A DNA stretch of 14,949 nt from Paramoeba atlantica. Lineage: Eukaryota; Protista; Discosea. Both the position numbers and the translations under genes were made by a program. Of this stretch, positions 1-14,949 are shown in pieces. The notes under the pieces are model-generated. The model had not been told where the DNA came from, searched no databases, and saw nothing but the letters and a program-made list of their open reading frames with translations. The stretch is from assembly GCA_977017575.1 (NCBI GenBank), contig CDRNVI010000136.1, positions 1 through 14,949 of the forward strand. The letters run 5' to 3'. Position 1 is the stretch's first letter; each line of letters opens with the position of its first letter.

Positions 1-159
1 TTTTTTATTGACCACCCCTGTGGTTGTTTATATGGAATGCACGTTTGTGAGATCCCATGCAGGGATCTGAGTGTGTGTGTCAAGACTATTGCCTTGTTGT
101 TGCCTAAGTTAGGCCTTGTTACCTACTCCTTGTTAGGTAGATTGAATTGCAAAATTGCA

Positions 160-543
160 CCTATGGGCACGTACACGGGCTCAGTGAGTCGGAACCGAGG
201 TTCCTCCAACACTTACACCAGGTCGTGCATAAGGAATCGTCTGTTCCGGGTGTGATTGGACGCTCCGCTCTTTCATAGGGGTAGGGTTACTACCGCGCGT
301 ATTACTTGAGTAATTATGGTTTTCGCGCTCGCGTTTTGCGCCCAAGTGGCCTAGAAGGCCCAAGTTTGCTTCGGGATTGATTTCCAGCTTAAGAGGCGTT
401 CAGCTGTTAATCATCGCCTGGTGGTCTTGCGGCGCCTCTTTTCAAAGGGCCGCTGTTGCTAGGGAGGCGAAACGAAAGTTCCTCTCGTACTACTTCGTAT
501 TTCCCTCGGCAAACCTGCCGAAATGTTTGATTAAGTAGGGTAA

Positions 544-587
<44 letters not shown>

Positions 588-1332
588 CATCCGGGTGAAC
601 AATCCGACCCTTTGCGTCAACTGCGGCGCAAGGCTAGGAAGAGCCGACATCGAAGGATCAAACGGCAACGTCGCTAGGAACGCTTGGCTGCCACAAGCCA
701 GTTATCCCTGTGGTAATTTTTATGACACCTCTGGCATTATACCTGAATGTACGTGCTCAAAGGATCGCTGGCCATGCTTTCACATTCTAGACTCGTACTG
801 AAAGTCTAAGATCAAGCGAGCTTTTGCCCTTGTGCGCCACGTGAGGTTTCTGTCCTCACTGAGCTCGCCTTAGGACACCTGCGTTGTCGTTTAGCAGATA
901 TGCCGCCCCAGCCAAACTCCCCATCTCAGTCTTGTCTCCAAACATAGGCTCACCCTGGTACATCCGCACCTGGGTTTAGAGCTACAACAGGTGAGTTGGC
1001 ACCGTTGAATTTCCCGTAGGACTCGGACGGTGCACGAATGCCCTGGGAGCCGTGAAGCCCCTTAAGACATAACTCCCTTTGCCTTATCATTGGATTTGCC
1101 GAGCAACGATAAAAGAAGTGGTTTTTCAGAACCGGCACCCTTTCGAGCACCTCCCACCTATGACTACACCTCCTATGTCGCCCGGCAAACTGAGACTGGA
1201 GTCAAACTCAACAGGGTCTTCTTTCCCCGCTTAATCATTCAAGACCGTTCCCTTGACGCAGTTGGTTCGCTAGATGGTAGCTAGGGACAGTGGGAATCTC
1301 ATTAATCCATTCATGCGCGTCTCTAATTAGAA

Positions 1333-1389
<57 letters not shown>

Positions 1390-2483
1390 GTAGGTGAATC
1401 TCGTCACATTGACATTCAGAGCACTGGGCAGAAATCAGCTTGCGTCATACAGCACTTGGCTGCGTCGCAAGCCTGTGTTTTAATTATACAGTTGGATTCC
1501 CCTTGGTAAGCAGTTCTGAAACAGCAATTCAGCGCTGTGAGAGTTTGCCCGGCTGCACCGTCCCCGAAGGGTCGGCGTAGTCCCTGGAGGCCCCGTCAAG
1601 CGTGACACCGCAGCACACACGCCCCACCCACGCAAGGCGGGCGGAGCACGCGACGCGGGCACGTCAGCCAGGACCTTGAGCCCAGGGACTTGCCGGCTCC
1701 CAACAGCTTTGCCTTCAGAGCCAATGCTTCTCGCGAGCATACGCATCTAATTTGCCGACTTCCCTTAGACTACCTTGTTCTATTGGCTAGAGCTTTCTAA
1801 GCTTGGGGACCGGATGCGGATATGGGTACGGCCTGCCATCAGGAAATAGGACCCCGCTGGCTTTTTCTGAAGCGTGAGACGGTTTCCCTACCACGCACAA
1901 ATGCATGGCTTTGCTGGATCCCCTTCCGCGTCACCGCACGACGCGAACTCAACGGAGGGGGAAGTCCATTCAAAAGAAAAGAGAACTCTTCCGGGCCCGT
2001 CCCACACTGTCACCAGCATCGTCTCAAAAGCGTTACCGCCTCAAATTCCCATGGTCAGCTGCGGGAATGTTAAGCCCGCTTTACTTTCAGCCAACTGGGT
2101 GGAGCCGTAGAGTTCCCAGGCATCGACGCCCGCCCACACGAGGTGAGCGAACGCGGCGCCCGGGCGGCCATCACCCCGTTCCACAAGTGCGGTCCAACGT
2201 TGGCTTTAGTACCGAGTGACTCGTGTCCGATCGCCGTTGACACGAAACCCTTCCCCACTTCAGCCTTCAACGATATATCGCGGAATTTCCGCAGTTGAAT
2301 ATTCGCTACTACAACCAAGATCTGCACTAGAGGCAGCTCCACCCAGGCTCACGCCAAAGGCTTCGCAGCTTTGCCTCCACGCACCCCTACACGGAACTGT
2401 GTTTCTTGTGCCCTCCCACAGTTACAGTTCCGGGGAACTGTCGGCGGCGGGCTTGAGCGCCATCCATTTTCGGGGCTGGTTGA

Positions 2484-2517
<34 letters not shown>

Positions 2518-3928
2518 ATTCCGACTTCCATGGCCACCGTCCTGCTGTCTAGATCAACGAACACCCTTCATGGTATCTATGAGCCCGCACTTAGGCGCCT
2601 TAAGTTCCCTTGCGGAGCATTCCGCATCGCCTGTTCCGCTTACCGAAAGAGGCCCACTTGGTGACATCATCCATTACCTTTGGCTTCATGAAAGCAAGCC
2701 AAATGCTGTGCACGTTTAAAGTTTGAGAATAGGTCGACATCAAATTGAAGCCAATGCCTCTAATCATTTGCTTTACCGCACACGACTGCTTTACTGTCAC
2801 CAGCTATCCTGAGGGAAACTTCGGGGTGAACCAGCTACTAGGTGGTTCGATGAGTCTTTCGCCCCTATACCCAAATCCAACGAGTGATTTGCACGTCAAC
2901 ATCGCTACGGACCTCCACCCAGGTTTCCCTCGGCTTCGTCCTGTTCAGGCATAGATCACCACCTTTCGGGTCCCAACATGTATGCTCAGGCTCAAAAACC
3001 CGGCCCATGGCCAAGTCTCGGCCGGTGTTGCACCCGGGTGCGGGGCATAACCCCGCACAACGGGTTGACACCTCACGCGGACATACGCGCTTCCCTTTCA
3101 GTACGCCTTATACCTTTCCAGTATATGACTCGCATACTTGTTAGACTCCTTGGTCCGTGTTTCAAGACGGGCGGATGAACCCCATCGTGGCCTATGGCCA
3201 TCTCAAAGTCTGTCTGTGGAGAGCGAACACGGGAGCTCCTGCCGCGAACCCCATCCGAGCCGGAGGCCCCCACCCGAGGGCGGGAGACGCTCCAAACCCA
3301 GGACGGAGCCGCAGCCGAGATCTCCACCGTTTCATCCCTCCCGAAGGGTAAGACTGTCCCAACCACACGCTCGAGTACAAAAGTGACGAAGGTGCGAAAT
3401 CACACCAACCCCCTTGCTCGGCGTGGGAACAGCGACAGACATGACGTGTGCGGAAGACACCCCGGGGTTGCCCCCGAGGTGCCCTACACACGTCTTGGAT
3501 AGTGGTACATCCCTTATCTTATGACGGCTTCAGGTGCTATTTCACTCTCTCTCCAAAGTGCTTTTCATCTTTCGCTCACGCTACTTGTATGCTATCGGTC
3601 TTCCCAAGATATTTAGCCTTGGCAGAGGTATACCTGCCCTTCGCACTGCATTCCCAAGCAGTACTACTCCGCAAGTCTCAAGTTAATCCCGCCTGAGGAG
3701 GACTCGGATCAAGGGGCTCTCACCCTCTATGGCGCTCCGTTCCAGGAAGACTTGTCCGAGTGTCCAGGCTTTCCTGAGACCTCTTACCCCACAATTCGGA
3801 TGTGATCCGATTCGGATTGGGCTAATCCCTCTTCGCTCGCCGCTACTAGGGGAATCACAGTTGTTTTCTTTTCCTCCGCTTAATGATATGCTTAAGTTCA
3901 GCGGGTGGTCGACCACAGCTCAGGCCTT
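160..3928 (-). rRNA. Large-subunit (28S-type) rRNA gene, copy 1, apparently complete
   Basis: Minus strand reads the universal LSU 5' motif ACCCGCTGAACTTAAGCATATCATTAAGCGGAGGAAAAGAAAAC (~3864-3907), helix 69 region GGGTAAACGGCGGGAGTAACTATGACTCTCTTAAGGTAG (~1347-1385), peptidyl-transferase motif CCTTCGATGTCGGCTC (641-656), sarcin-ricin loop AGTACGAGAGGAAC (478-491) and a terminal helix GTAAG...CTGAG (~180-216). 5' end placed by analogy with recalled kinetoplastid LSU starts; 3' end uncertain by about 15 nt. Confidence 0.97.
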
Positions 3929-4002
3929 GAAAATGGTTTCTTTGGTGTGAGACACCAACGGAATTCGATTTCAGGGCACGTGTCGTTCCCCAGCAAGGTT
4001 AT
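3929..4002 (-). other. ITS2 (about 74 nt)
   Basis: Non-conserved sequence between the inferred 5.8S 3' end (GTTCAGTGCCG) and LSU 5' start (GGCCTGAG...ACCCGCTGAAC); contains hairpin TTGGTGT-CTC-ACACCAA. Confidence 0.75.
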
Positions 4003-4158
4003 CGGCACTGAACTGTGGACGTGCTTGAGTGCGAGACCCAGCACACATGTTGCGTTCAAAGGTTTAGTACTACGCTTGATTCTGCAATGCGTACGAATTA
4101 TCGCATATTGCCGCGTCCTTCATCGATTGGGAAGCCAAGACATCCACCGTCATAAGTT
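4003..4158 (-). rRNA. 5.8S rRNA gene (about 156 nt)
   Basis: Minus strand AACTTATGACGGTGGATGTCTTGGCTTCCCAATCGATGAAGGACGCGGC...ATTGCAGAATC...CTTTGAACGCA matches conserved 5.8S motifs (GGAT..CTTGGC, CGATGAAG.ACGC, GAATC, TTTGAACGCA); lies between SSU and LSU. Confidence 0.93.
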
Positions 4159-4412
4159 ATACATGACTCGGTTTCATCCGGGCGCGTGGGGGGTTTCCCC
4201 CCCACGCGTAGCACCGGGCCGAGTAAACCCCCTTGAGCCGTCTACGGCGCAAGCCGTCGACGAGGAGGAACAAAAAAGGAGTCCCCCCAAACCCCGCGAA
4301 CGGGGTTTGGAACAGACGGTTTCCCTTCCCCGAGCGCAAACGAGCACTCGGGAGGGCTGTGTTAGGACGCACCGTACGGTGTGCCTGTTGTTCAAGGTTC
4401 GAAAACTTTCGA
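4159..4412 (-). other. ITS1 (about 255 nt)
   Basis: Non-conserved, moderately GC-rich sequence between SSU 3' end (GGATCATT) and 5.8S start. Confidence 0.8.
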
Positions 4413-6436
4413 AATGATCCAGCTGCAGGTTCACCTACAGCTACCTTGTTACGACTTTTGCTTCCTCTACTAGTTAAATATGGGTTAACTTTCCCACAAT
4501 CCTCGAAGGGATCGCAAGTCCGTTAACCTTTATCCAACTGGCATCGGTAACAACGACGGGCGGTGTGTACAAATGGCAGGGACGTAGTCAATGCGCTTTG
4601 ATGAAGCACGTCTACTAGGCATTCCTCGTTCAAGAAGAATAATTGCAAGCTTCGATCCCAAGCACGACAGAGTTTTCTCAGTTTCCCCACTTCTTTCGAA
4701 GAAGGACCAAAAAGGCTTCACTCATTCACTTTGTCATTGTAGTGCGCGTGTCGCCCAGGACATTTAGGAGCATCACGGACCTGCTGTTGCCCAAAATGCC
4801 ACCGTGCTAAGGCGCACGGAATGCCGCGAAGAAGGGGATGCACTATCTGGGAAGACGAGTGGGACGAATCCCCTCGCTTCCGTTTACCTTTCGGTAGATG
4901 GTGCCCCTAGTAAGCGGATTGGGTCTCGTCCGTTAAAGGAATCAACCAAACAAATCACTTCACCGACCAAAAGCGGCCATGCACCACCGTCAAACGAATT
5001 AAGAAAGAACTCTCAATCTGTCAATCCTACCGTTGTCCTGTCCTGGTAAGGTTCCCCGTGTTGAGTCAAATTAAACCGCACACTCCACGCCTGGTGGTGC
5101 CATTCCGTCAATTTCTTTAAGTTTCAGCCTTGCGAACGTACTCCCCCATGAGACCATAGCCTCAGCTTTCGCGTTGAAGGGGGAGCAGTGCCGAAAAGAT
5201 CCCATCAGAGCAAAATGCTATCCGATCCATGGGCGTCATCGTTTGCAGTCGTGGACTACAATGGTATCTAATCATCTTCGATCTCCACACTTTAGTTCTT
5301 GATTGATGAAGGTATACTTGGAAAATGCCTTCGCATAAGTTCGTCCCCGAGCGGTCTAAGAATTTCACCTCTCACGCTCAGATACGTTTTCCCCCGACAA
5401 CCCCCATTGATCCCGTGTTCGACGAAGCTTTCCATCACACAAGGTGACGGAAATTAACACTTCGCCAACCGATTACCCATGTTGGGTCGTAAAAACCGAC
5501 AAAAGACTGACCCAGTGGTCGATGCTTTGTCATTCCATGCTTTATCATCCAGCCGCAGGCGGCTGCTTTGAACACGCTGTTTTCTTCACAGTGATAACGA
5601 CGGGCGGTCTCGACATGCGTTGCATGTGGGATGTTAGCCTCTTCGGCCAACCGCTTCCACGTCACCACTGAAGGGACGCTTCCGCAGACTCCGGCCCCGT
5701 CTAGGACAGAGTGGTGAGGAAGAGCTGCCGAGGCAGCAAACTTTCACCACTCTGAATTCAACTACGAACCCTTTAACAGCAACAACGTTAATATACGCTA
5801 TTGGAGCTGGAATTACCGCGGGTGCTGGCACCAGACTTGTCCTCCAATTGTTACTCGTTGGTGGGTTTACGTACCACCCATTGCGAACCCCACACTCAAA
5901 GAGGCGGGGACGCTATTTCTCTTCGCTGCCTCACCAATTTGGCATTGGGCAATTTACGCGCCTGCTGCCCTCCGTAGAAGTGGTAGCTGTTTCTCAGGCT
6001 CCCTCTCCGGAATCGAACCCTAATTCCCCGTACCCGTTATCGCCACGGTAGTCCACTACACTACCGTCAAAAGCTGATAGGGCAGAAATTCGTCGGGACT
6101 CGCACACCAAAGGTGCGCTTTTGCTGAATGGTTTGATTCATCAATTTACGACACTGCCATTACTGGCGTCGGTCTTTGTACCAACCATTCGCGAGCCACA
6201 TTCCCCACCTTGGGTTTCCCCGCAGTGGTTGAATGGAATGTGTCACGTGACGTACATGTATTAGCTTCGCCTTTCGCGAAGTTATCCATTCAAGCAGTTT
6301 TCACTGCAATTCTCCCGGTAGATCATTTCTGATATAATGAGCCGTTCGCAGACCTCCTATTGTCTCAGTTACTCTTAGGCTTGCATGGCTTAATCCTTGA
6401 AACAAGCATATGACTACTGGCAGAATCAACCAGGTT
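4413..6436 (-). rRNA. Small-subunit (18S) rRNA gene (about 2,020 nt), Euglenozoa-like
   Basis: Begins AACCTGGTTGATTCTGCCAG (6436 downward); contains GTGCCAGCACCCGCGGTAATTCCAGCTC (~5803-5830) and TTGTACACACCGCCCGTC (4555-4572); ends AAGTCGTAACAAGGTAGCTGTAGGTGAACCTGCAGCTGGATCATT. The CAGCACCC, GCTGTTAAAGGGTTCGTAG and AGCTGTAGGTGAACCTGCAGCTGG variants match my recollection of kinetoplastid-type SSU. Confidence 0.98.
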
Positions 6437-6697
6437 TCTTGAAAGGGAGGGTGATTCCTCTCTCAATCTGTTCCCTCACAGTAAACTGTAAGGTTCAATG
6501 TAGTACCCATCTCAATGGGACTGTATTTCTGTTCCTCATCGTGCATACATCGGCTTACTAGGAAGCCACAAGATGTATTCAATCATACGAGTGAGCTGCG
6601 TTGCGACTTGTGGGCACTTTCGCCTCACTTTCAATTACGGGTCGAACCATCCAAAATTTTTTTCATCTTACATGTACAAAATGCAAACCGTGTTTTT

Positions 6698-6824
6698 GGT
6701 GGCCAGGTGGCCACTTTTTTTGGGGGGGCGGCCAGGTGGCCACTTTTTTTGGGGGGTGGCCAGGTGGCCACTTTTTTTGAGGGGTGGCCAGGTGGCCACT
6801 TTTTTTGGGGGGTGGCCACTTTTT
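6698..6824. repeat. Short array of about 4.5 units, GGTGGCCAGGTGGCCAC-T(6-7)-G(4-7), 28-31 nt per unit
   Basis: Directly visible; same core as the 27-nt array at 7845-8528. Confidence 0.95.
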
Positions 6825-7844
6825 CCATCTCGGGAAGGACTAATCATCGGGATCTCACGGAATAAAACGTTTCGGGAAACCAAGAAGGTACGTTACTTTT
6901 CCAGGCAACCCACCCCTTCTTTGCTAAGCACCACTTTTTCGTTAAGCACCCCTTTCTTATTAACCGAACGGGATGATGTTGTCTAGATATCCTTTTGGAT
7001 GCGTCAGGTGGGAGAGATAATCCCACCCCATCTCCAGCAGAGACCAAAGCATAAAAATCTTCAATTCTAACAATCCGGAGCAGTGTAGTTTTAGCGAATA
7101 CAAGCAAAGCAGAGTCTGACGCAACACGAGATTCACTTAAGCGTTGGTTAGCAAGTCTCGCGCTACCCAGTTAATGGGGTGTCTCCATTGAGGTGCGTGA
7201 GTGGAAACACACACTTTCTGTAGAAACTTTTGAGAAAGAAAACCCTTGTTCAATGCCTACGTCGCCGCGTGAATCCCCTCATTGCTGATCTCTAATTTTT
7301 TCTCTTTCACCACCTGCACCGCCAACGGTGTGAATTGTCTCAGCCCCGCTTCAAAAGAGTACGAGGACCGACATAGGGAAGTCTCTCGCGAGAGAAGCTT
7401 GCGCTACGACCCCACTTGTAGGACAAAAGGGGTTTCTTACAGGATTACAGTGAGTGGGTGAACAACTTTTTGGACCTTTTTCATCTCCAAAAATAGCAAT
7501 TCCAGCACCCGGCGGCAACAAAACAAGGCGCCAAAGAACTAGGGTGTGAGGAATGCCGCGGAAAGAGTCTGCCCGTCACCAATAAATCAAGGTGCTAAAA
7601 AAGTAGGACAGATTCTTTCCCGCGTATGGAGTTACCCAGTGTTAACACAACGAAACACTAGGAAACTAGGGTAAATACCCATACACACTAACAAATGATC
7701 ATTGGATGCTTGGCCGATGTGCCGTCCGTAGTGCCCACAGCCTAAAAAGTGTGCAGTACGGCAAAAGCTATGATTTCATAGCCTGGAGCACGCGGCTAAA
7801 AGCAGTAAATTTTGGATCGTGCCTGGCTATCACCCGGACACCAC

Positions 7845-8528
7845 ACTTTTTCATAGGGTGGCCAGGTGGCCACTTTTTCATAGGGTGGCCAGGTGGCCAC
7901 TTTTTTATGGGGTGGCCAGGTGGCCACTTTTTTATGGGGTGGCCAGGTGGCCACTTTTTCATAGGGTGGCCAGGTGGCCACTTTTTCATAGGGTGGCCAG
8001 GTGGCCACTTTTTCAAAGCGGGGCTAGCTGGCCACTTTTTCATAGGGTGGCCAGGTGGCCACTTTTTCAAAGCGGGGCTAGCTGGCCACTTTTTCATAGG
8101 GTGGCCAGGTGGCCACTTTTCCATAGGGTGGCCAGGTGGCCCCTTTTTCATAGGGTGGCCAGGTGGCCACTTTTCCAGAGGGTGGCCAGGTGGCCCCTTT
8201 TTCATAGGGTGGCCAGGTGGCCACTTTTCCAGAGGGTGGCCAGGTGGCCCCTTTTTCATAGGGTGGCCAGGTGGCCACTTTTCCAGAGGGTGGCCAGGTG
8301 GCCCCTTTTTCATAGGGTGGCCAGGTGGCCACTTTTCCAGAGGGTGTCCAGGTGGCCACTTTTTCATAGGGTGGGCAGGTGGCCACGTTTTCAAAGCGGG
8401 GCTAGCTGGCCACTTTTTCATAGGGTGGCCAGGTGGCGAGTTACGCATAGGGTGGCCAGGTGGCCACTTTTTCAAAGCGGGGCCAGGTGGCCACTTTTTC
8501 ATAGGGTGGCCAGGTGGCCACTTTTTCA
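7845..8528. repeat. Tandem array of about 25 x 27-nt units, consensus CATAGGGTGGCCAGGTGGCCACTTTTT
   Basis: Directly visible; variants CAAAGCGGGGCTAGCTGGCCACTTTTT and CAGAGGGTGGCCAGGTGGCCCCTTTTT; the 9-aa periodicity of the overlapping repeat ORFs confirms a 27-nt period. Confidence 0.97.
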
Positions 8529-8557
8529 GAGGGAGCTCGATGCATCTGTGGGGATTG

Positions 8558-8704: not shown

Positions 8705-9013
8705 TGGTAGTTTGGATGAGTACTCATCGAAATGACCTCTTCACATGGTAGTTTGGATGAGTACTCATTGAAACGACCTCTTCACATGGTAGTTTGGATG
8801 AGTACTCATCGAAACGACCTCTTCACATTGTAGTTTGGATGAGTACTCATCGAAACGACCTCTTCACATGGTAGTTTGGATGAGTACTCATCGAAACGAC
8901 CTCCTCACATGGTAGTTTGGATGAGTACTCATCGAAACGACCTCTTCACACGGTAGTTTGGATGAGTACTCATTGAAACGACCTCTGCACATGGTACTTT
9001 GGATGAGTACTTT
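8705..9013. repeat. Tandem array of 7 full plus 1 partial 41-nt units, consensus TGGTAGTTTGGATGAGTACTCATCGAAACGACCTCTTCACA
   Basis: Palindromic cores start at 8715, 8756, 8797, 8838, 8879, 8920, 8961, 9002 (exact 41-nt period); only single-base variants between units. Confidence 0.97.
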
Positions 9014-9566: not shown

Positions 9567-9627
9567 AAAGTACTCATCCAAAGTACCATGTGCAGAGGTC
9601 GTTTCGATGAGTACTCATCCAAACTAC
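9567..9627. repeat. 61-bp inverted copy of 8953-9013 (60/61 identical)
   Basis: Reverse complement of 9567-9627 matches 8953-9013 including the terminal-unit variants CTGCAC and GGTACTTT; the one mismatch is CATTGAAA versus CATCGAAA. Confidence 0.95.
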
Positions 9628-10046
9628 TACAACGCCCATCTGTGCCCCCAAGCACGCTACTTATCCAGGTACGCTACTTATCGATGTACGGAACAAATTC
9701 ACGTGCACTACTTATAAAATTTGTAGTTTGGCTCTCTTGTTCACTAGCTTTCCTCTCCATACTCAGTGCTTTCTCTCTCATAGAACATTCCCACTCAAAA
9801 ACGAATTTCCCGTATTCCGGGAAGATAGATGACGTAAATCGGAAGTGGGATGACTTTGACGAAGGGATGAAGGATCGGAATTCATCGCTAAGCGAGTGTA
9901 ACGAGCAGTCAATCACTGGACAACCTCGCCCCCAAAATGACTGCAGCTCATGACTGCAGTGCCTTGAAAGCAGAGTCATGAGTATGTCTGCCCTGTGAAG
10001 GATCATTTGTTTTCGTTGATTTGCGAAATTGCACTTAGAGGCATGT

Positions 10047-10085
10047 ACACGGTAACGATAGAGATACAGTTTCTGTACCTTGTTG
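10047..10085 (+). other. Spliced-leader-exon-like sequence (possible relic), no GT donor
   Basis: ACACGGTAACGATAGAGATACAGTTTCTGTACCTTGTTG resembles the recalled kinetoplastid/diplonemid 39-nt SL (e.g. AACTAACGCTATTATTGATACAGTTTCTGTACTATATTG): 16-nt exact GATACAGTTTCTGTAC, upstream TAACG, and TTG end at the same spacing. Followed by ATTTTTTT rather than GTA. Confidence 0.4.
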
Positions 10086-10262
10086 ATTTTTTTATTCTCA
10101 GACAGTACTAACTCTTGCGCACGCATCATCCTCACTGCGGTGTGGATGCCGTGCCTCCGTGGAGGGATTGGAGGCGTCGTTACGCATTCAATCCATTTCA
10201 ATCATACTAAGCCACTCCCATCCGGTTAAAAACAGAGCGATCTGTGGAACAAAGTGGTAGTA

Positions 10263-10291
10263 CAGTGAGTCGGAACGGAGGTTCTTTCAAC
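10263..10291 (-). repeat. Degenerate partial copy (D) of the LSU 3'-terminal helix
   Basis: CAGTGAGTCGGAACGGAGGTTCTTTCAAC matches CAGTGAGTCGGAACCGAGGTTCCTCCAAC at 26/29. Confidence 0.8.
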
Positions 10292-10511
10292 TAGATCATT
10301 CTGATTTTTTTGTTTTATGCGTCGTATGCACCTACTCTTGTGTATGCCGTAAGACCCAAGCTGTGTGTAAAAGAGGTTAAGTAAGAAGGTAGTGTGTTGA
10401 TTCACACATGTTCTTGTGCACATGAGAAGCACGTTCCTGAGATCCCCACGCCGTAATGCGGAGCGTCTTTGTGATCAAGGCATGGCCTTTGTTTACTCCC
10501 ATATCTTTGTT

Positions 10512-10612
10512 TACTCCTTGTTACGTAGATTGAATTGCACCTATGGGCACGTACACGGGCTCAGTGAGTCGGAACCGAGGTTCCTCCAACACTTACACCA
10601 GGTCGTGCATAA
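10512..10612 (-). repeat. Extra copy (C) of the LSU 3'-terminal module
   Basis: 80-nt core 10533-10612 identical to 11298-11377 (= 153-232); flank differs by one substitution and an 8-nt indel. Confidence 0.92.
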
Positions 10613-10821
10613 AGACTTTGTTGTCGTGTGAGTGGGTGTCTGACCCAACCATGAGACTACCATGAAGCGCTTTATGTACCTCTCGTGCATGTGGAACACA
10701 TACATTCTTGTGCACATGAGAAGCACGTTCCTGAGAACCCCACACTGTAATGCGGAGTCTTTGTGATCGAGACGGTTTTGTCTCTGTGATCAAGGCATAA
10801 CACCTTTGTGTTATCTTTGTT

Positions 10822-10932
10822 TACTCCTTGTTAGGTAGATTGAATTGCAAAATTGCACCTATGGGCACGTACACGGGCTCAGTGAGTCGGAACCGAGGTT
10901 CCTCCAACACTTACACCAGGTCGTGCATAAGG
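10822..10932 (-). repeat. Extra copy (B) of the LSU 3'-terminal module
   Basis: About 111 nt identical to 11269-11379; 80-nt core at 10851-10930. Confidence 0.93.
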
Positions 10933-11145
10933 ACTTTGTTGTCGTGTGAGTGGGTGTCTGACCCAACCATGAGGTTGTTGAGACTTGACCGTGGAGTGAG
11001 AGTGTATCAACACATGATCACACATAGCACACCTGCTATGTGCTCTACATCTGTTTCATTTATATAGTGAGGAAGCTGTGTAAGCTTGAAGAGAGAGGGT
11101 TGTGCAGGACTCACCGTGGATGTTGGTGACGAGAATGTGGGGTCC

Positions 11146-11688
11146 TTTTTTATTGACCACCCCTGTGGTTGTTTATATGGAATGCACGTTTGTGAGATCC
11201 CATGCAGGGATCTGAGTGTGTGTGTCAAGACTATTGCCTTGTTGTTGCCTAAGTTAGGCCTTGTTACCTACTCCTTGTTAGGTAGATTGAATTGCAAAAT
11301 TGCACCTATGGGCACGTACACGGGCTCAGTGAGTCGGAACCGAGGTTCCTCCAACACTTACACCAGGTCGTGCATAAGGAATCGTCTGTTCCGGGTGTGA
11401 TTGGACGCTCCGCTCTTTCATAGGGGTAGGGTTACTACCGCGCGTATTACTTGAGTAATTATGGTTTTCGCGCTCGCGTTTTGCGCCCAAGTGGCCTAGA
11501 AGGCCCAAGTTTGCTTCGGGATTGATTTCCAGCTTAAGAGGCGTTCAGCTGTTAATCATCGCCTGGTGGTCTTGCGGCGCCTCTTTTCAAAGGGCCGCTG
11601 TTGCTAGGGAGGCGAAACGAAAGTTCCTCTCGTACTACTTCGTATTTCCCTCGGCAAACCTGCCGAAATGTTTGATTAAGTAGGGTAA

Positions 11689-11732
<44 letters not shown>

Positions 11733-12477
11733 CATCCGGGTGAACAATCCGACCCTTTGCGTCAACTGCGGCGCAAGGCTAGGAAGAGCCGACATCGAAG
11801 GATCAAACGGCAACGTCGCTAGGAACGCTTGGCTGCCACAAGCCAGTTATCCCTGTGGTAATTTTTATGACACCTCTGGCATTATACCTGAATGTACGTG
11901 CTCAAAGGATCGCTGGCCATGCTTTCACATTCTAGACTCGTACTGAAAGTCTAAGATCAAGCGAGCTTTTGCCCTTGTGCGCCACGTGAGGTTTCTGTCC
12001 TCACTGAGCTCGCCTTAGGACACCTGCGTTGTCGTTTAGCAGATATGCCGCCCCAGCCAAACTCCCCATCTCAGTCTTGTCTCCAAACATAGGCTCACCC
12101 TGGTACATCCGCACCTGGGTTTAGAGCTACAACAGGTGAGTTGGCACCGTTGAATTTCCCGTAGGACTCGGACGGTGCACGAATGCCCTGGGAGCCGTGA
12201 AGCCCCTTAAGACATAACTCCCTTTGCCTTATCATTGGATTTGCCGAGCAACGATAAAAGAAGTGGTTTTTCAGAACCGGCACCCTTTCGAGCACCTCCC
12301 ACCTATGACTACACCTCCTATGTCGCCCGGCAAACTGAGACTGGAGTCAAACTCAACAGGGTCTTCTTTCCCCGCTTAATCATTCAAGACCGTTCCCTTG
12401 ACGCAGTTGGTTCGCTAGATGGTAGCTAGGGACAGTGGGAATCTCATTAATCCATTCATGCGCGTCTCTAATTAGAA

Positions 12478-12534
<57 letters not shown>

Positions 12535-13628
12535 GTAGGTGAATCTCGTCACATTGACATTCAGAGCACTGGGCAGAAATCAGCTTGCGTCATACAGCAC
12601 TTGGCTGCGTCGCAAGCCTGTGTTTTAATTATACAGTTGGATTCCCCTTGGTAAGCAGTTCTGAAACAGCAATTCAGCGCTGTGAGAGTTTGCCCGGCTG
12701 CACCGTCCCCGAAGGGTCGGCGTAGTCCCTGGAGGCCCCGTCAAGCGTGACACCGCAGCACACACGCCCCACCCACGCAAGGCGGGCGGAGCACGCGACG
12801 CGGGCACGTCAGCCAGGACCTTGAGCCCAGGGACTTGCCGGCTCCCAACAGCTTTGCCTTCAGAGCCAATGCTTCTCGCGAGCATACGCATCTAATTTGC
12901 CGACTTCCCTTAGACTACCTTGTTCTATTGGCTAGAGCTTTCTAAGCTTGGGGACCGGATGCGGATATGGGTACGGCCTGCCATCAGGAAATAGGACCCC
13001 GCTGGCTTTTTCTGAAGCGTGAGACGGTTTCCCTACCACGCACAAATGCATGGCTTTGCTGGATCCCCTTCCGCGTCACCGCACGACGCGAACTCAACGG
13101 AGGGGGAAGTCCATTCAAAAGAAAAGAGAACTCTTCCGGGCCCGTCCCACACTGTCACCAGCATCGTCTCAAAAGCGTTACCGCCTCAAATTCCCATGGT
13201 CAGCTGCGGGAATGTTAAGCCCGCTTTACTTTCAGCCAACTGGGTGGAGCCGTAGAGTTCCCAGGCATCGACGCCCGCCCACACGAGGTGAGCGAACGCG
13301 GCGCCCGGGCGGCCATCACCCCGTTCCACAAGTGCGGTCCAACGTTGGCTTTAGTACCGAGTGACTCGTGTCCGATCGCCGTTGACACGAAACCCTTCCC
13401 CACTTCAGCCTTCAACGATATATCGCGGAATTTCCGCAGTTGAATATTCGCTACTACAACCAAGATCTGCACTAGAGGCAGCTCCACCCAGGCTCACGCC
13501 AAAGGCTTCGCAGCTTTGCCTCCACGCACCCCTACACGGAACTGTGTTTCTTGTGCCCTCCCACAGTTACAGTTCCGGGGAACTGTCGGCGGCGGGCTTG
13601 AGCGCCATCCATTTTCGGGGCTGGTTGA

Positions 13629-13662
<34 letters not shown>

Positions 13663-14949
13663 ATTCCGACTTCCATGGCCACCGTCCTGCTGTCTAGATC
13701 AACGAACACCCTTCATGGTATCTATGAGCCCGCACTTAGGCGCCTTAAGTTCCCTTGCGGAGCATTCCGCATCGCCTGTTCCGCTTACCGAAAGAGGCCC
13801 ACTTGGTGACATCATCCATTACCTTTGGCTTCATGAAAGCAAGCCAAATGCTGTGCACGTTTAAAGTTTGAGAATAGGTCGACATCAAATTGAAGCCAAT
13901 GCCTCTAATCATTTGCTTTACCGCACACGACTGCTTTACTGTCACCAGCTATCCTGAGGGAAACTTCGGGGTGAACCAGCTACTAGGTGGTTCGATGAGT
14001 CTTTCGCCCCTATACCCAAATCCAACGAGTGATTTGCACGTCAACATCGCTACGGACCTCCACCCAGGTTTCCCTCGGCTTCGTCCTGTTCAGGCATAGA
14101 TCACCACCTTTCGGGTCCCAACATGTATGCTCAGGCTCAAAAACCCGGCCCATGGCCAAGTCTCGGCCGGTGTTGCACCCGGGTGCGGGGCATAACCCCG
14201 CACAACGGGTTGACACCTCACGCGGACATACGCGCTTCCCTTTCAGTACGCCTTATACCTTTCCAGTATATGACTCGCATACTTGTTAGACTCCTTGGTC
14301 CGTGTTTCAAGACGGGCGGATGAACCCCATCGTGGCCTATGGCCATCTCAAAGTCTGTCTGTGGAGAGCGAACACGGGAGCTCCTGCCGCGAACCCCATC
14401 CGAGCCGGAGGCCCCCACCCGAGGGCGGGAGACGCTCCAAACCCAGGACGGAGCCGCAGCCGAGATCTCCACCGTTTCATCCCTCCCGAAGGGTAAGACT
14501 GTCCCAACCACACGCTCGAGTACAAAAGTGACGAAGGTGCGAAATCACACCAACCCCCTTGCTCGGCGTGGGAACAGCGACAGACATGACGTGTGCGGAA
14601 GACACCCCGGGGTTGCCCCCGAGGTGCCCTACACACGTCTTGGATAGTGGTACATCCCTTATCTTATGACGGCTTCAGGTGCTATTTCACTCTCTCTCCA
14701 AAGTGCTTTTCATCTTTCGCTCACGCTACTTGTATGCTATCGGTCTTCCCAAGATATTTAGCCTTGGCAGAGGTATACCTGCCCTTCGCACTGCATTCCC
14801 AAGCAGTACTACTCCGCAAGTCTCAAGTTAATCCCGCCTGAGGAGGACTCGGATCAAGGGGCTCTCACCCTCTATGGCGCTCCGTTCCAGGAAGACTTGT
14901 CCGAGTGTCCAGGCTTTCCTGAGACCTCTTACCCCACAATTCGGATGTG
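11146..14949. repeat. Second copy of positions 1-3804; rDNA unit length 11,145 bp
   Basis: For example TCAGTGAGTC at 181 and 11326; every ORF in 37-3696 recurs with identical translation at +11,145. Confidence 0.97.
11305..14949 (-). rRNA. LSU rRNA gene, copy 2 (5' ~125 nt beyond window end)
   Basis: Identical to copy 1 at offset 11,145; the ORF track is also reproduced exactly at that offset. Confidence 0.97.

Follow-up and report, generated by a model that had tools for sequence, protein, structure and literature searches.

Organisation of the rDNA in the window

The window, a stretch of 14,949 nt from the Paramoeba atlantica assembly GCA_977017575.1 (contig CDRNVI010000136.1), comprises 1.3 rDNA units, all encoded on the minus strand, which Rfam resolves into one complete unit and part of another (Table 1). 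The unit period is 11145 nt and the two adjacent units are identical at 3804 of 3804 positions (1-3804 compared with 11146-14949), the LSU of the upstream unit being identical to 155-3804 of the other. This complete identity reflects either very tight homogenisation or a consensus-type assembly, and the analysis of the intergenic spacer is that of the single complete spacer in the window. The 3' end of the LSU is placed at 11300 by the Rfam alignment, which is also the position at which the similarity to two relatives stops. An ORF search returned no meaningful ORF and a tRNA search returned no tRNA genes.

The two relatives are metagenome contigs, L002 (Ga0247828_10001964, positions 481-6624) and L001 (Ga0115591_1161117); scans of genome contigs and viral contigs for relatives found none. 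L002 is 92% identical to the window in the SSU and 85-91% identical in blocks of the LSU. It carries a complete SSU-5.8S-LSU array followed by 188 nt of unrelated 3' spacer and has no second copy of the LSU end, while L001 ends about 10 nt short of the LSU 3' end and includes no spacer. The SSU in the window starts ...GGTTGATTCTGCCAG...TTGTTTCAAGGA and ends ...CCTGCAGCTGGATCATTTC, termini that we take to be kinetoplastid-like, or euglenozoan, when set beside trypanosomatid termini. The lengths of the SSU (2025 nt), ITS1 (253 nt), 5.8S (156 nt) and ITS2 (75 nt) best fit the free-living prokinetoplastids among the groups compared in Table S1 of PMC9082867, apart from the longer ITS1. The corresponding values are 2022, 162, 155 and 72 in Papus and 2018, 105, 155 and 73 in Ankaliazontas (PMC9082867 Table S1). 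The rDNA in the window appears, on these features of its sequence, to come from a prokinetoplastid. Two primers for Neoparamoeba perurans found no match.

The intergenic spacer also holds repeats of other kinds. A 27-bp repeat that consists of GGTGGCCAGGTGGCC and a T-run after it is present in about 25 copies at 7844-8533. Four more copies, with a 28-bp period, are found at 6698-6818, only about 260-380 nt ahead of the start of the SSU, in what is presumed to be the 5' external spacer or promoter region. Between 8549 and 9638 there is an array of 41-bp units, each with a palindrome (GATGAGTACTCATC core), of which 7.5 copies occupy 8705-9011; weak matches to microRNA models in this region correspond to the palindromes only. 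A 61-nt inverted repeat that is 98% complementary (8953-9013 and 9567-9627) encloses 553 nt.

Table 1. Features of the rDNA window, with the copies of the LSU 3' end and the spacer units that they head
Feature	Positions	Strand	Basis or remark
LSU of upstream unit, 5' end cut by window edge	11300-14949	minus	Rfam RF02543, 2373.7 bits, model positions 133-3401
Conserved LSU hairpin directly preceding the block, GGAA / 7-nt loop / UUCC	11378-11392	minus	Rfam structure line and consensus fold with relatives
Block, copy A	11269-11380	minus	exact match to 10822-10933
3'-terminal compound helix of LSU, wholly within block	11312-11373	minus	RNAalifold with L001 and L002
Intergenic spacer	11299-6437	minus	between Rfam-called genes
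Remainder of sub-repeat unit A (3' spacer)	10977-11268	minus	56-60% against matching parts of B and C; about 130 nt extra, absent from B and C
Segment X before copy B, 43 nt, non-LSU-like	10934-10976	minus	B and C 42/43; A and B 18/43, not above shuffle level
Block, copy B	10822-10933	minus	112/112 against A
Remainder of sub-repeat unit B	10659-10821	minus	84% against unit C
Segment X before copy C	10616-10658	minus	shared with copy B
Block, copy C	10512-10615	minus	80-nt core 10533-10612 identical to A and B
Remainder of sub-repeat unit C	10292-10511	minus	alignment with other units
Copy D, decayed remnant	~10240-10291	minus	hairpin tip 26/29 at 10263-10291; rest barely alignable
Copy E, remnant: last 25 nt of LSU and spacer head	10016-10052	minus	84% over 37 nt
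SSU	6436-4412	minus	Rfam
5.8S	4158-4003	minus	Rfam
LSU, complete, second unit	3927-155	minus	Rfam; 3773 nt
Same block at 3' end of complete LSU (155-3927), second unit	124-235	minus	unit period of 11145 and identity of 1-3804

Copies of the LSU 3' end in the spacer

A block that recurs within the intergenic spacer is made up of the last 81 nt of the LSU (11300-11380) and the 31 nt of 3' external spacer that follow them (11269-11299). Copy A (11269-11380), which is the gene end itself, and copy B (10822-10933) are identical at 112 of 112 positions, this being the exact extension of the match. The probability of 112 straight matches by chance is about 4e-18 even at a background identity of 70%, and the identity cannot have arisen by chance. 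An 80-nt core is identical at 11298-11377, 10851-10930 and 10533-10612. A preliminary description had listed these three sites together with a 26/29 remnant at 10263-10291, and all of them lie where it had put them; it had taken the repeat to be an LSU module of 80 nt, which is right as to the identity of the three copies and too narrow as to the extent, since A and B agree over the full 112 nt including 31 nt of spacer. To its three identical copies and one degenerate copy, copy E adds a fifth, partial copy; copy C ceases to be identical beyond the core.

Copy C differs from A and B by two substitutions, one of them at 10613, and by an 8-nt deletion at the LSU/spacer junction. The deletion sits at a short direct repeat on the junction between gene and spacer, after which the match resumes and continues, with the second substitution, down to 10512. 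A short palindrome, TGCAA-TT-TTGCA, can be read off the sequence exactly on the LSU/spacer junction of copies A and B and is lost from copy C through the deletion. Copy D may, to judge from the alignment, extend past 10263 to about 10240. Copy quality falls with distance from the gene, with B being perfect, C carrying three changes and D and E being fragments. A search of the spacer by itself with Rfam does not recover B and C as LSU fragments. This is a limit of sensitivity, as the score of only 80 nt from the variable 3' end is too low, and does not speak against homology.

Structure of the repeated block

The core aligns to approximately positions 3320-3401 of Rfam RF02543, about the last 80 positions of the model. 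The terminal compound helix within it comprises 21 pairs, two of which are compensatory in the RNAalifold comparison with L001 and L002, and the single-sequence fold has a free energy of -30.2 kcal/mol (z -2.2). The preliminary description had read the block on the minus strand with a GGAAC/GTTCC stem, which is correct; the stem forms the tip of the compound helix with which the LSU ends. It had further equated the module with helices H99-H101, and this equation is retained for the terminal helix, which aligns to RF02543 with the two compensatory pairs, and is given up for H99, the hairpin of which contributes only its last 3 nt to the block. The edge of the block at 11380 thus falls inside the 3' strand of the hairpin at 11378-11392, and because this boundary cuts a hairpin strand the block is not a clean structural or processing unit. 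The last 401 nt of the LSU (11300-11700) align to model positions 2977-3401 (425 positions), with no elongation and no insertion at 11380, and the LSU gene is continuous across the edge of the block.

Folding of the first 150 nt of the 3' spacer (11150-11299, minus strand) gives four or five hairpins with a free energy of -37.5 kcal/mol (z -3.3 against shuffles), among which are a GAUCCC-loop-GGGAUC hairpin at about 11198-11214 and the 3'-most hairpin at about 11151-11169. The stems just beyond the block in unit A are not retained in units B and C.

Mosaic organisation of the spacer units

The block heads a tandem, head-to-tail spacer sub-repeat with units of 300-450 bp, and its copies lie in register at spacings of 447, 318 and 299 nt. 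The units headed by A, B and C measure 447, 318 and about 320 nt. Homology between the units spans more than the block. Downstream of it, identity over gap-free columns is 56% between A and B, 60% between A and C and 84% between B and C, and the parts that align significantly are those of A with C and of B with C. The alignment score of B and C is 109 and that of A and C is 36, a value reached by none of 300 shuffles (best shuffle 28), while the downstream alignment of A and B is weak when taken alone, its score being reached by 6 of 300 shuffles. Upstream of the block the situation is different in that the 43 nt of segment X are 98% identical between B and C, whereas A shares only 42% with either of them. 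Over the 20-90 nt that precede copies B and C, local and anchored global alignments detected no homology to the LSU better than that of shuffled sequences; a collinear 9/10 match, CCAATCACAC compared with CCACTCACAC, is suggestive but non-significant. Within the block, A and B are 100% identical, and A and C as well as B and C are 98% identical with the 8-nt gap. The earlier observation that the core is kept far better than its flanks is therefore borne out by the comparison of 98-100% in the block with 42-98% upstream and 56-84% downstream.

Copy B is a mosaic that resembles C on both sides and is exactly A in the middle. A run of 112 unbroken matches between flanks that have diverged to this degree excludes plain shared ancestry, so that some force must keep the tract uniform. 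The mosaic points to a force confined to the block, either gene conversion or selection.

Runs rich in A are present in the minus-strand sense, as T-runs on the plus strand, about 150-290 nt downstream of block copies A, C and D: AATAAAAAA (11146-11154), ACAAAAAAATCA (10302-10313) and AATAAAAAAATCA (10084-10096). Their pairwise similarity is no better than chance.

Origin and maintenance of the copies

The extra copies are probably non-coding 'pseudo 3' ends', each at the head of a unit in a tandem spacer sub-repeat that begins, with its first unit, inside the LSU, and they are likely to have been kept alike by gene conversion. In this scheme unequal exchange or replication slippage would have duplicated about 300-450 bp of sequence that started within the LSU, 81 nt short of its 3' end, and extended into the spacer, and this first duplication would have created the junction between segment X and the block. 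One unit would later have been duplicated to yield B and C, while the older copies, D and E, would have decayed. The bodies of the units may then have drifted to the present 56-60% between A and B or C, while the 112-nt block was repeatedly overwritten by short-tract gene conversion. The net direction of this conversion would be from A into B and C, with the adjacent 31 nt of spacer being dragged along. Such an outward flow is expected because ribosome function fixes the LSU part of A, so that a mutated tract entering A would be selected out. The mature LSU would remain a single continuous molecule, and any transcript that RNA polymerase I extended into B and C would carry these copies as part of the discarded 3' spacer. 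They may also provide extra sites for the normal 3'-end machinery, which the pattern does not demand.

The comparison between species is in keeping with this interpretation, as is the finding that no promoter-like or other spacer sequence is duplicated beside B or C. The 31-nt head of the spacer is identical at 31 of 31 positions between A and B, yet it cannot be aligned with the spacer of L002, and a sequence that is uniform within a genome and fast-evolving between species bears the mark of concerted evolution. We infer from this that conversion is what keeps the copies alike. To judge from the arrangement of the sequence, the mature LSU would likewise be continuous, and B and C may be transcribed. 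Purifying selection on the block would fit the data of a single genome as well as conversion does, and on such data the two cannot be separated. The sharp 3' edge of the identical tract at 11269 could equally be the edge of a functional element, and the identity may look sharper than it is as a result of consensus polishing during assembly.

The reading that gives selection the leading role is that the block is a functional 3'-end module which has been repeated as a fail-safe and is held intact by selection rather than conversion. Each copy would then offer the terminal helix and 31 nt of spacer to a cleavage, trimming or termination machinery, and B or C would halt the polymerases that had read through, or be the place where their transcripts are cleaved. 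The conserved tract does end sharply and take in 31 nt of spacer that are dispensable for the ribosome, its copies are spaced at 300-450 nt like those of known multi-terminator regions, and the palindrome TGCAA-TT-TTGCA marks the junction in both A and B. In plants, multiple termination sites are known within a few hundred bp of the LSU, and cucumber and mung bean have several termination signals downstream of the 26S gene (PMC3409069). However, 81 of the 112 nt lie within the mature LSU, where a terminator of the roadblock type would halt the polymerase before the end of the gene; known Pol I terminators are located downstream of the mature LSU 3' end, so that only the 31-nt spacer head could qualify as one. 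Furthermore, the spacer head is not conserved in L002 and shows no complementarity of at least 9 nt to the rest of the pre-rRNA. Copy C is without the junction palindrome and copies D and E have decayed, which implies that selection on the distal copies is weak or absent. A repeated 3'-end signal is for these reasons considered rather unlikely, though it deserves to be kept in mind. A very small probability is given to an artefact of assembly or polishing, in which diverged or misjoined copies B and C were 'corrected' to the abundant LSU end. The identity of the two units over 3804 positions is compatible with a consensus-type rDNA assembly and the edges of the identical tract are razor-sharp, but B and C are embedded in spacer-specific flanks of their own which they share with each other and not with the LSU, and C retains private differences within the block.

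The preliminary description had suggested two possible roles for the copies, repeated 3'-processing or termination signals being one of them. The other was that the LSU 3' end is made as a separate small rRNA from several gene copies, in which case A, B and C would be three genes for an RNA of about 80 nt. The lineage does look euglenozoan, and its sister group, the metakinetoplastids, cuts the LSU 3' region into small rRNAs, whereas prokinetoplastids and diplonemids have a continuous 28S without an extra ITS (PMC9082867). The core is moreover perfect in three copies and folds alone into its native helix. Against this, no excised spacer precedes the block, which is colinear with the model as well as with L001 and L002, and its 5' boundary cuts the strand of a conserved hairpin rather than lying in an expansion segment. 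Upstream of the block, B and C have a flank that bears no relation to the one of A (42% identity, not above shuffle level), so that a single 5'-processing signal cannot serve all three copies, and the deletion in copy C falls on the 3' end of the putative RNA. In prokinetoplastids the last 28S segment is without elongation (PMC9082867 Table S1). With no extra spacer in the LSU, a boundary within a helix strand and a continuous prokinetoplastid 28S, this proposal is highly improbable. The precedent on which it drew, a repeated LSU-epsilon in Leishmania, was not found in the literature searched; in three strains this terminal fragment has a read-depth ratio of about 5-18, similar to the 6-22 of the other rRNA genes (PMC6222132). 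It is just as hard to credit that transcription of the spacer copies is followed by their excision, so that each would yield a free RNA of about 80-110 nt with the terminal helix in it; were this so, such RNAs could enter pre-60S particles or compete for them. Overall, the gene-anchored spacer repeat is best regarded as an ordinary product of concerted evolution and a known kind of rDNA spacer dynamics, with no evidence for a fragmented LSU.

Comparison with known systems

Spacer sub-repeat arrays under concerted evolution by unequal crossing-over and gene conversion, such as those of Daphnia (PMC3036644) and Cucurbita (PMC6589552), likewise follow the LSU as tandem repeats, each a few hundred bp long. 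As in the window, homogeneity is uneven within the unit, and high identity within a genome is combined with quick turnover between species. Unlike in those arrays, the first unit here begins 81 nt inside the LSU coding region, and the segment that is tied to ribosome-constrained sequence therefore stays perfect while the rest of the unit drifts.

The inclusion of gene sequence in a spacer repeat also has a counterpart in the 5S rDNA of Pistia stratiotes, in which a 68-bp tandem duplication includes 15 bp of the gene 3' end together with the terminator (PMC8928438). There too the unit contains the 3' bases of the gene and the downstream signal and is near-perfect in that part while the rest differs. 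The Pistia repeat, however, belongs to a Pol III gene and is present in two copies of 68 bp that contain 15 bp of gene, as opposed to a Pol I gene, units of 300-450 bp, 81 nt of gene and three good copies with two remnants in the present case.

Pol I terminators, such as the mouse Sal boxes bound by TTF-I and the Reb1/Nsi1 sites of yeast, are short protein-binding sites that lie wholly downstream of the mature 3' end. Like the block, they occur as several similar elements over about 1 kb downstream of the LSU; unlike them, the repeated block consists mostly of coding sequence and is without an established binding motif. A parallel at an LSU gene is reportedly the rDNA spacer of cucumber, where Ganal and colleagues in 1988 and Zentgraf and colleagues in 1990 are said to have described a repetition of the 25S 3' border with adjacent spacer and several pre-rRNA termination sites. 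That case would share the repetition of the LSU 3' end with spacer, but it concerns a plant.

The LSU-epsilon and other small rRNAs of metakinetoplastids and the plastid 4.5S rRNA correspond to the same 3'-terminal region of the LSU, the former in a related lineage within the Kinetoplastea. Each of these fragments has a single copy per unit and is bounded by excised spacers that lie in expansion segments, in contrast to the block, which has no such spacer, begins within a helix strand and has its extra copies in the intergenic spacer. The literature searched yielded no description of LSU 3'-end copies in a kinetoplastid or diplonemid spacer, nor anything on Paramoeba spacers, and nothing on Pol I termination or LSU 3' maturation in early-branching kinetoplastids.

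Implications

In practical terms, annotators and rRNA pipelines should not take the spacer copies for extra or truncated LSU genes, and probes or primers directed to the LSU 3' end would match three sites per unit. The prokinetoplastid lineage branches just outside the kinetoplastids that release the LSU 3' region as separate small rRNAs. If free RNAs were indeed produced from the spacer copies, this would be a living intermediate on the way to fragmentation of the LSU 3' end, in which redundant gene copies precede the break. If instead the block were a working 3'-end signal, it would open a first way into the study of how Pol I terminates, and how the LSU 3' end matures, in early-branching kinetoplastids. 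As a gene-anchored spacer repeat, which we hold to be the probable explanation, its perfect 112 nt amid a drift to about 56-60% would provide a natural marker for the length of conversion tracts in rDNA.
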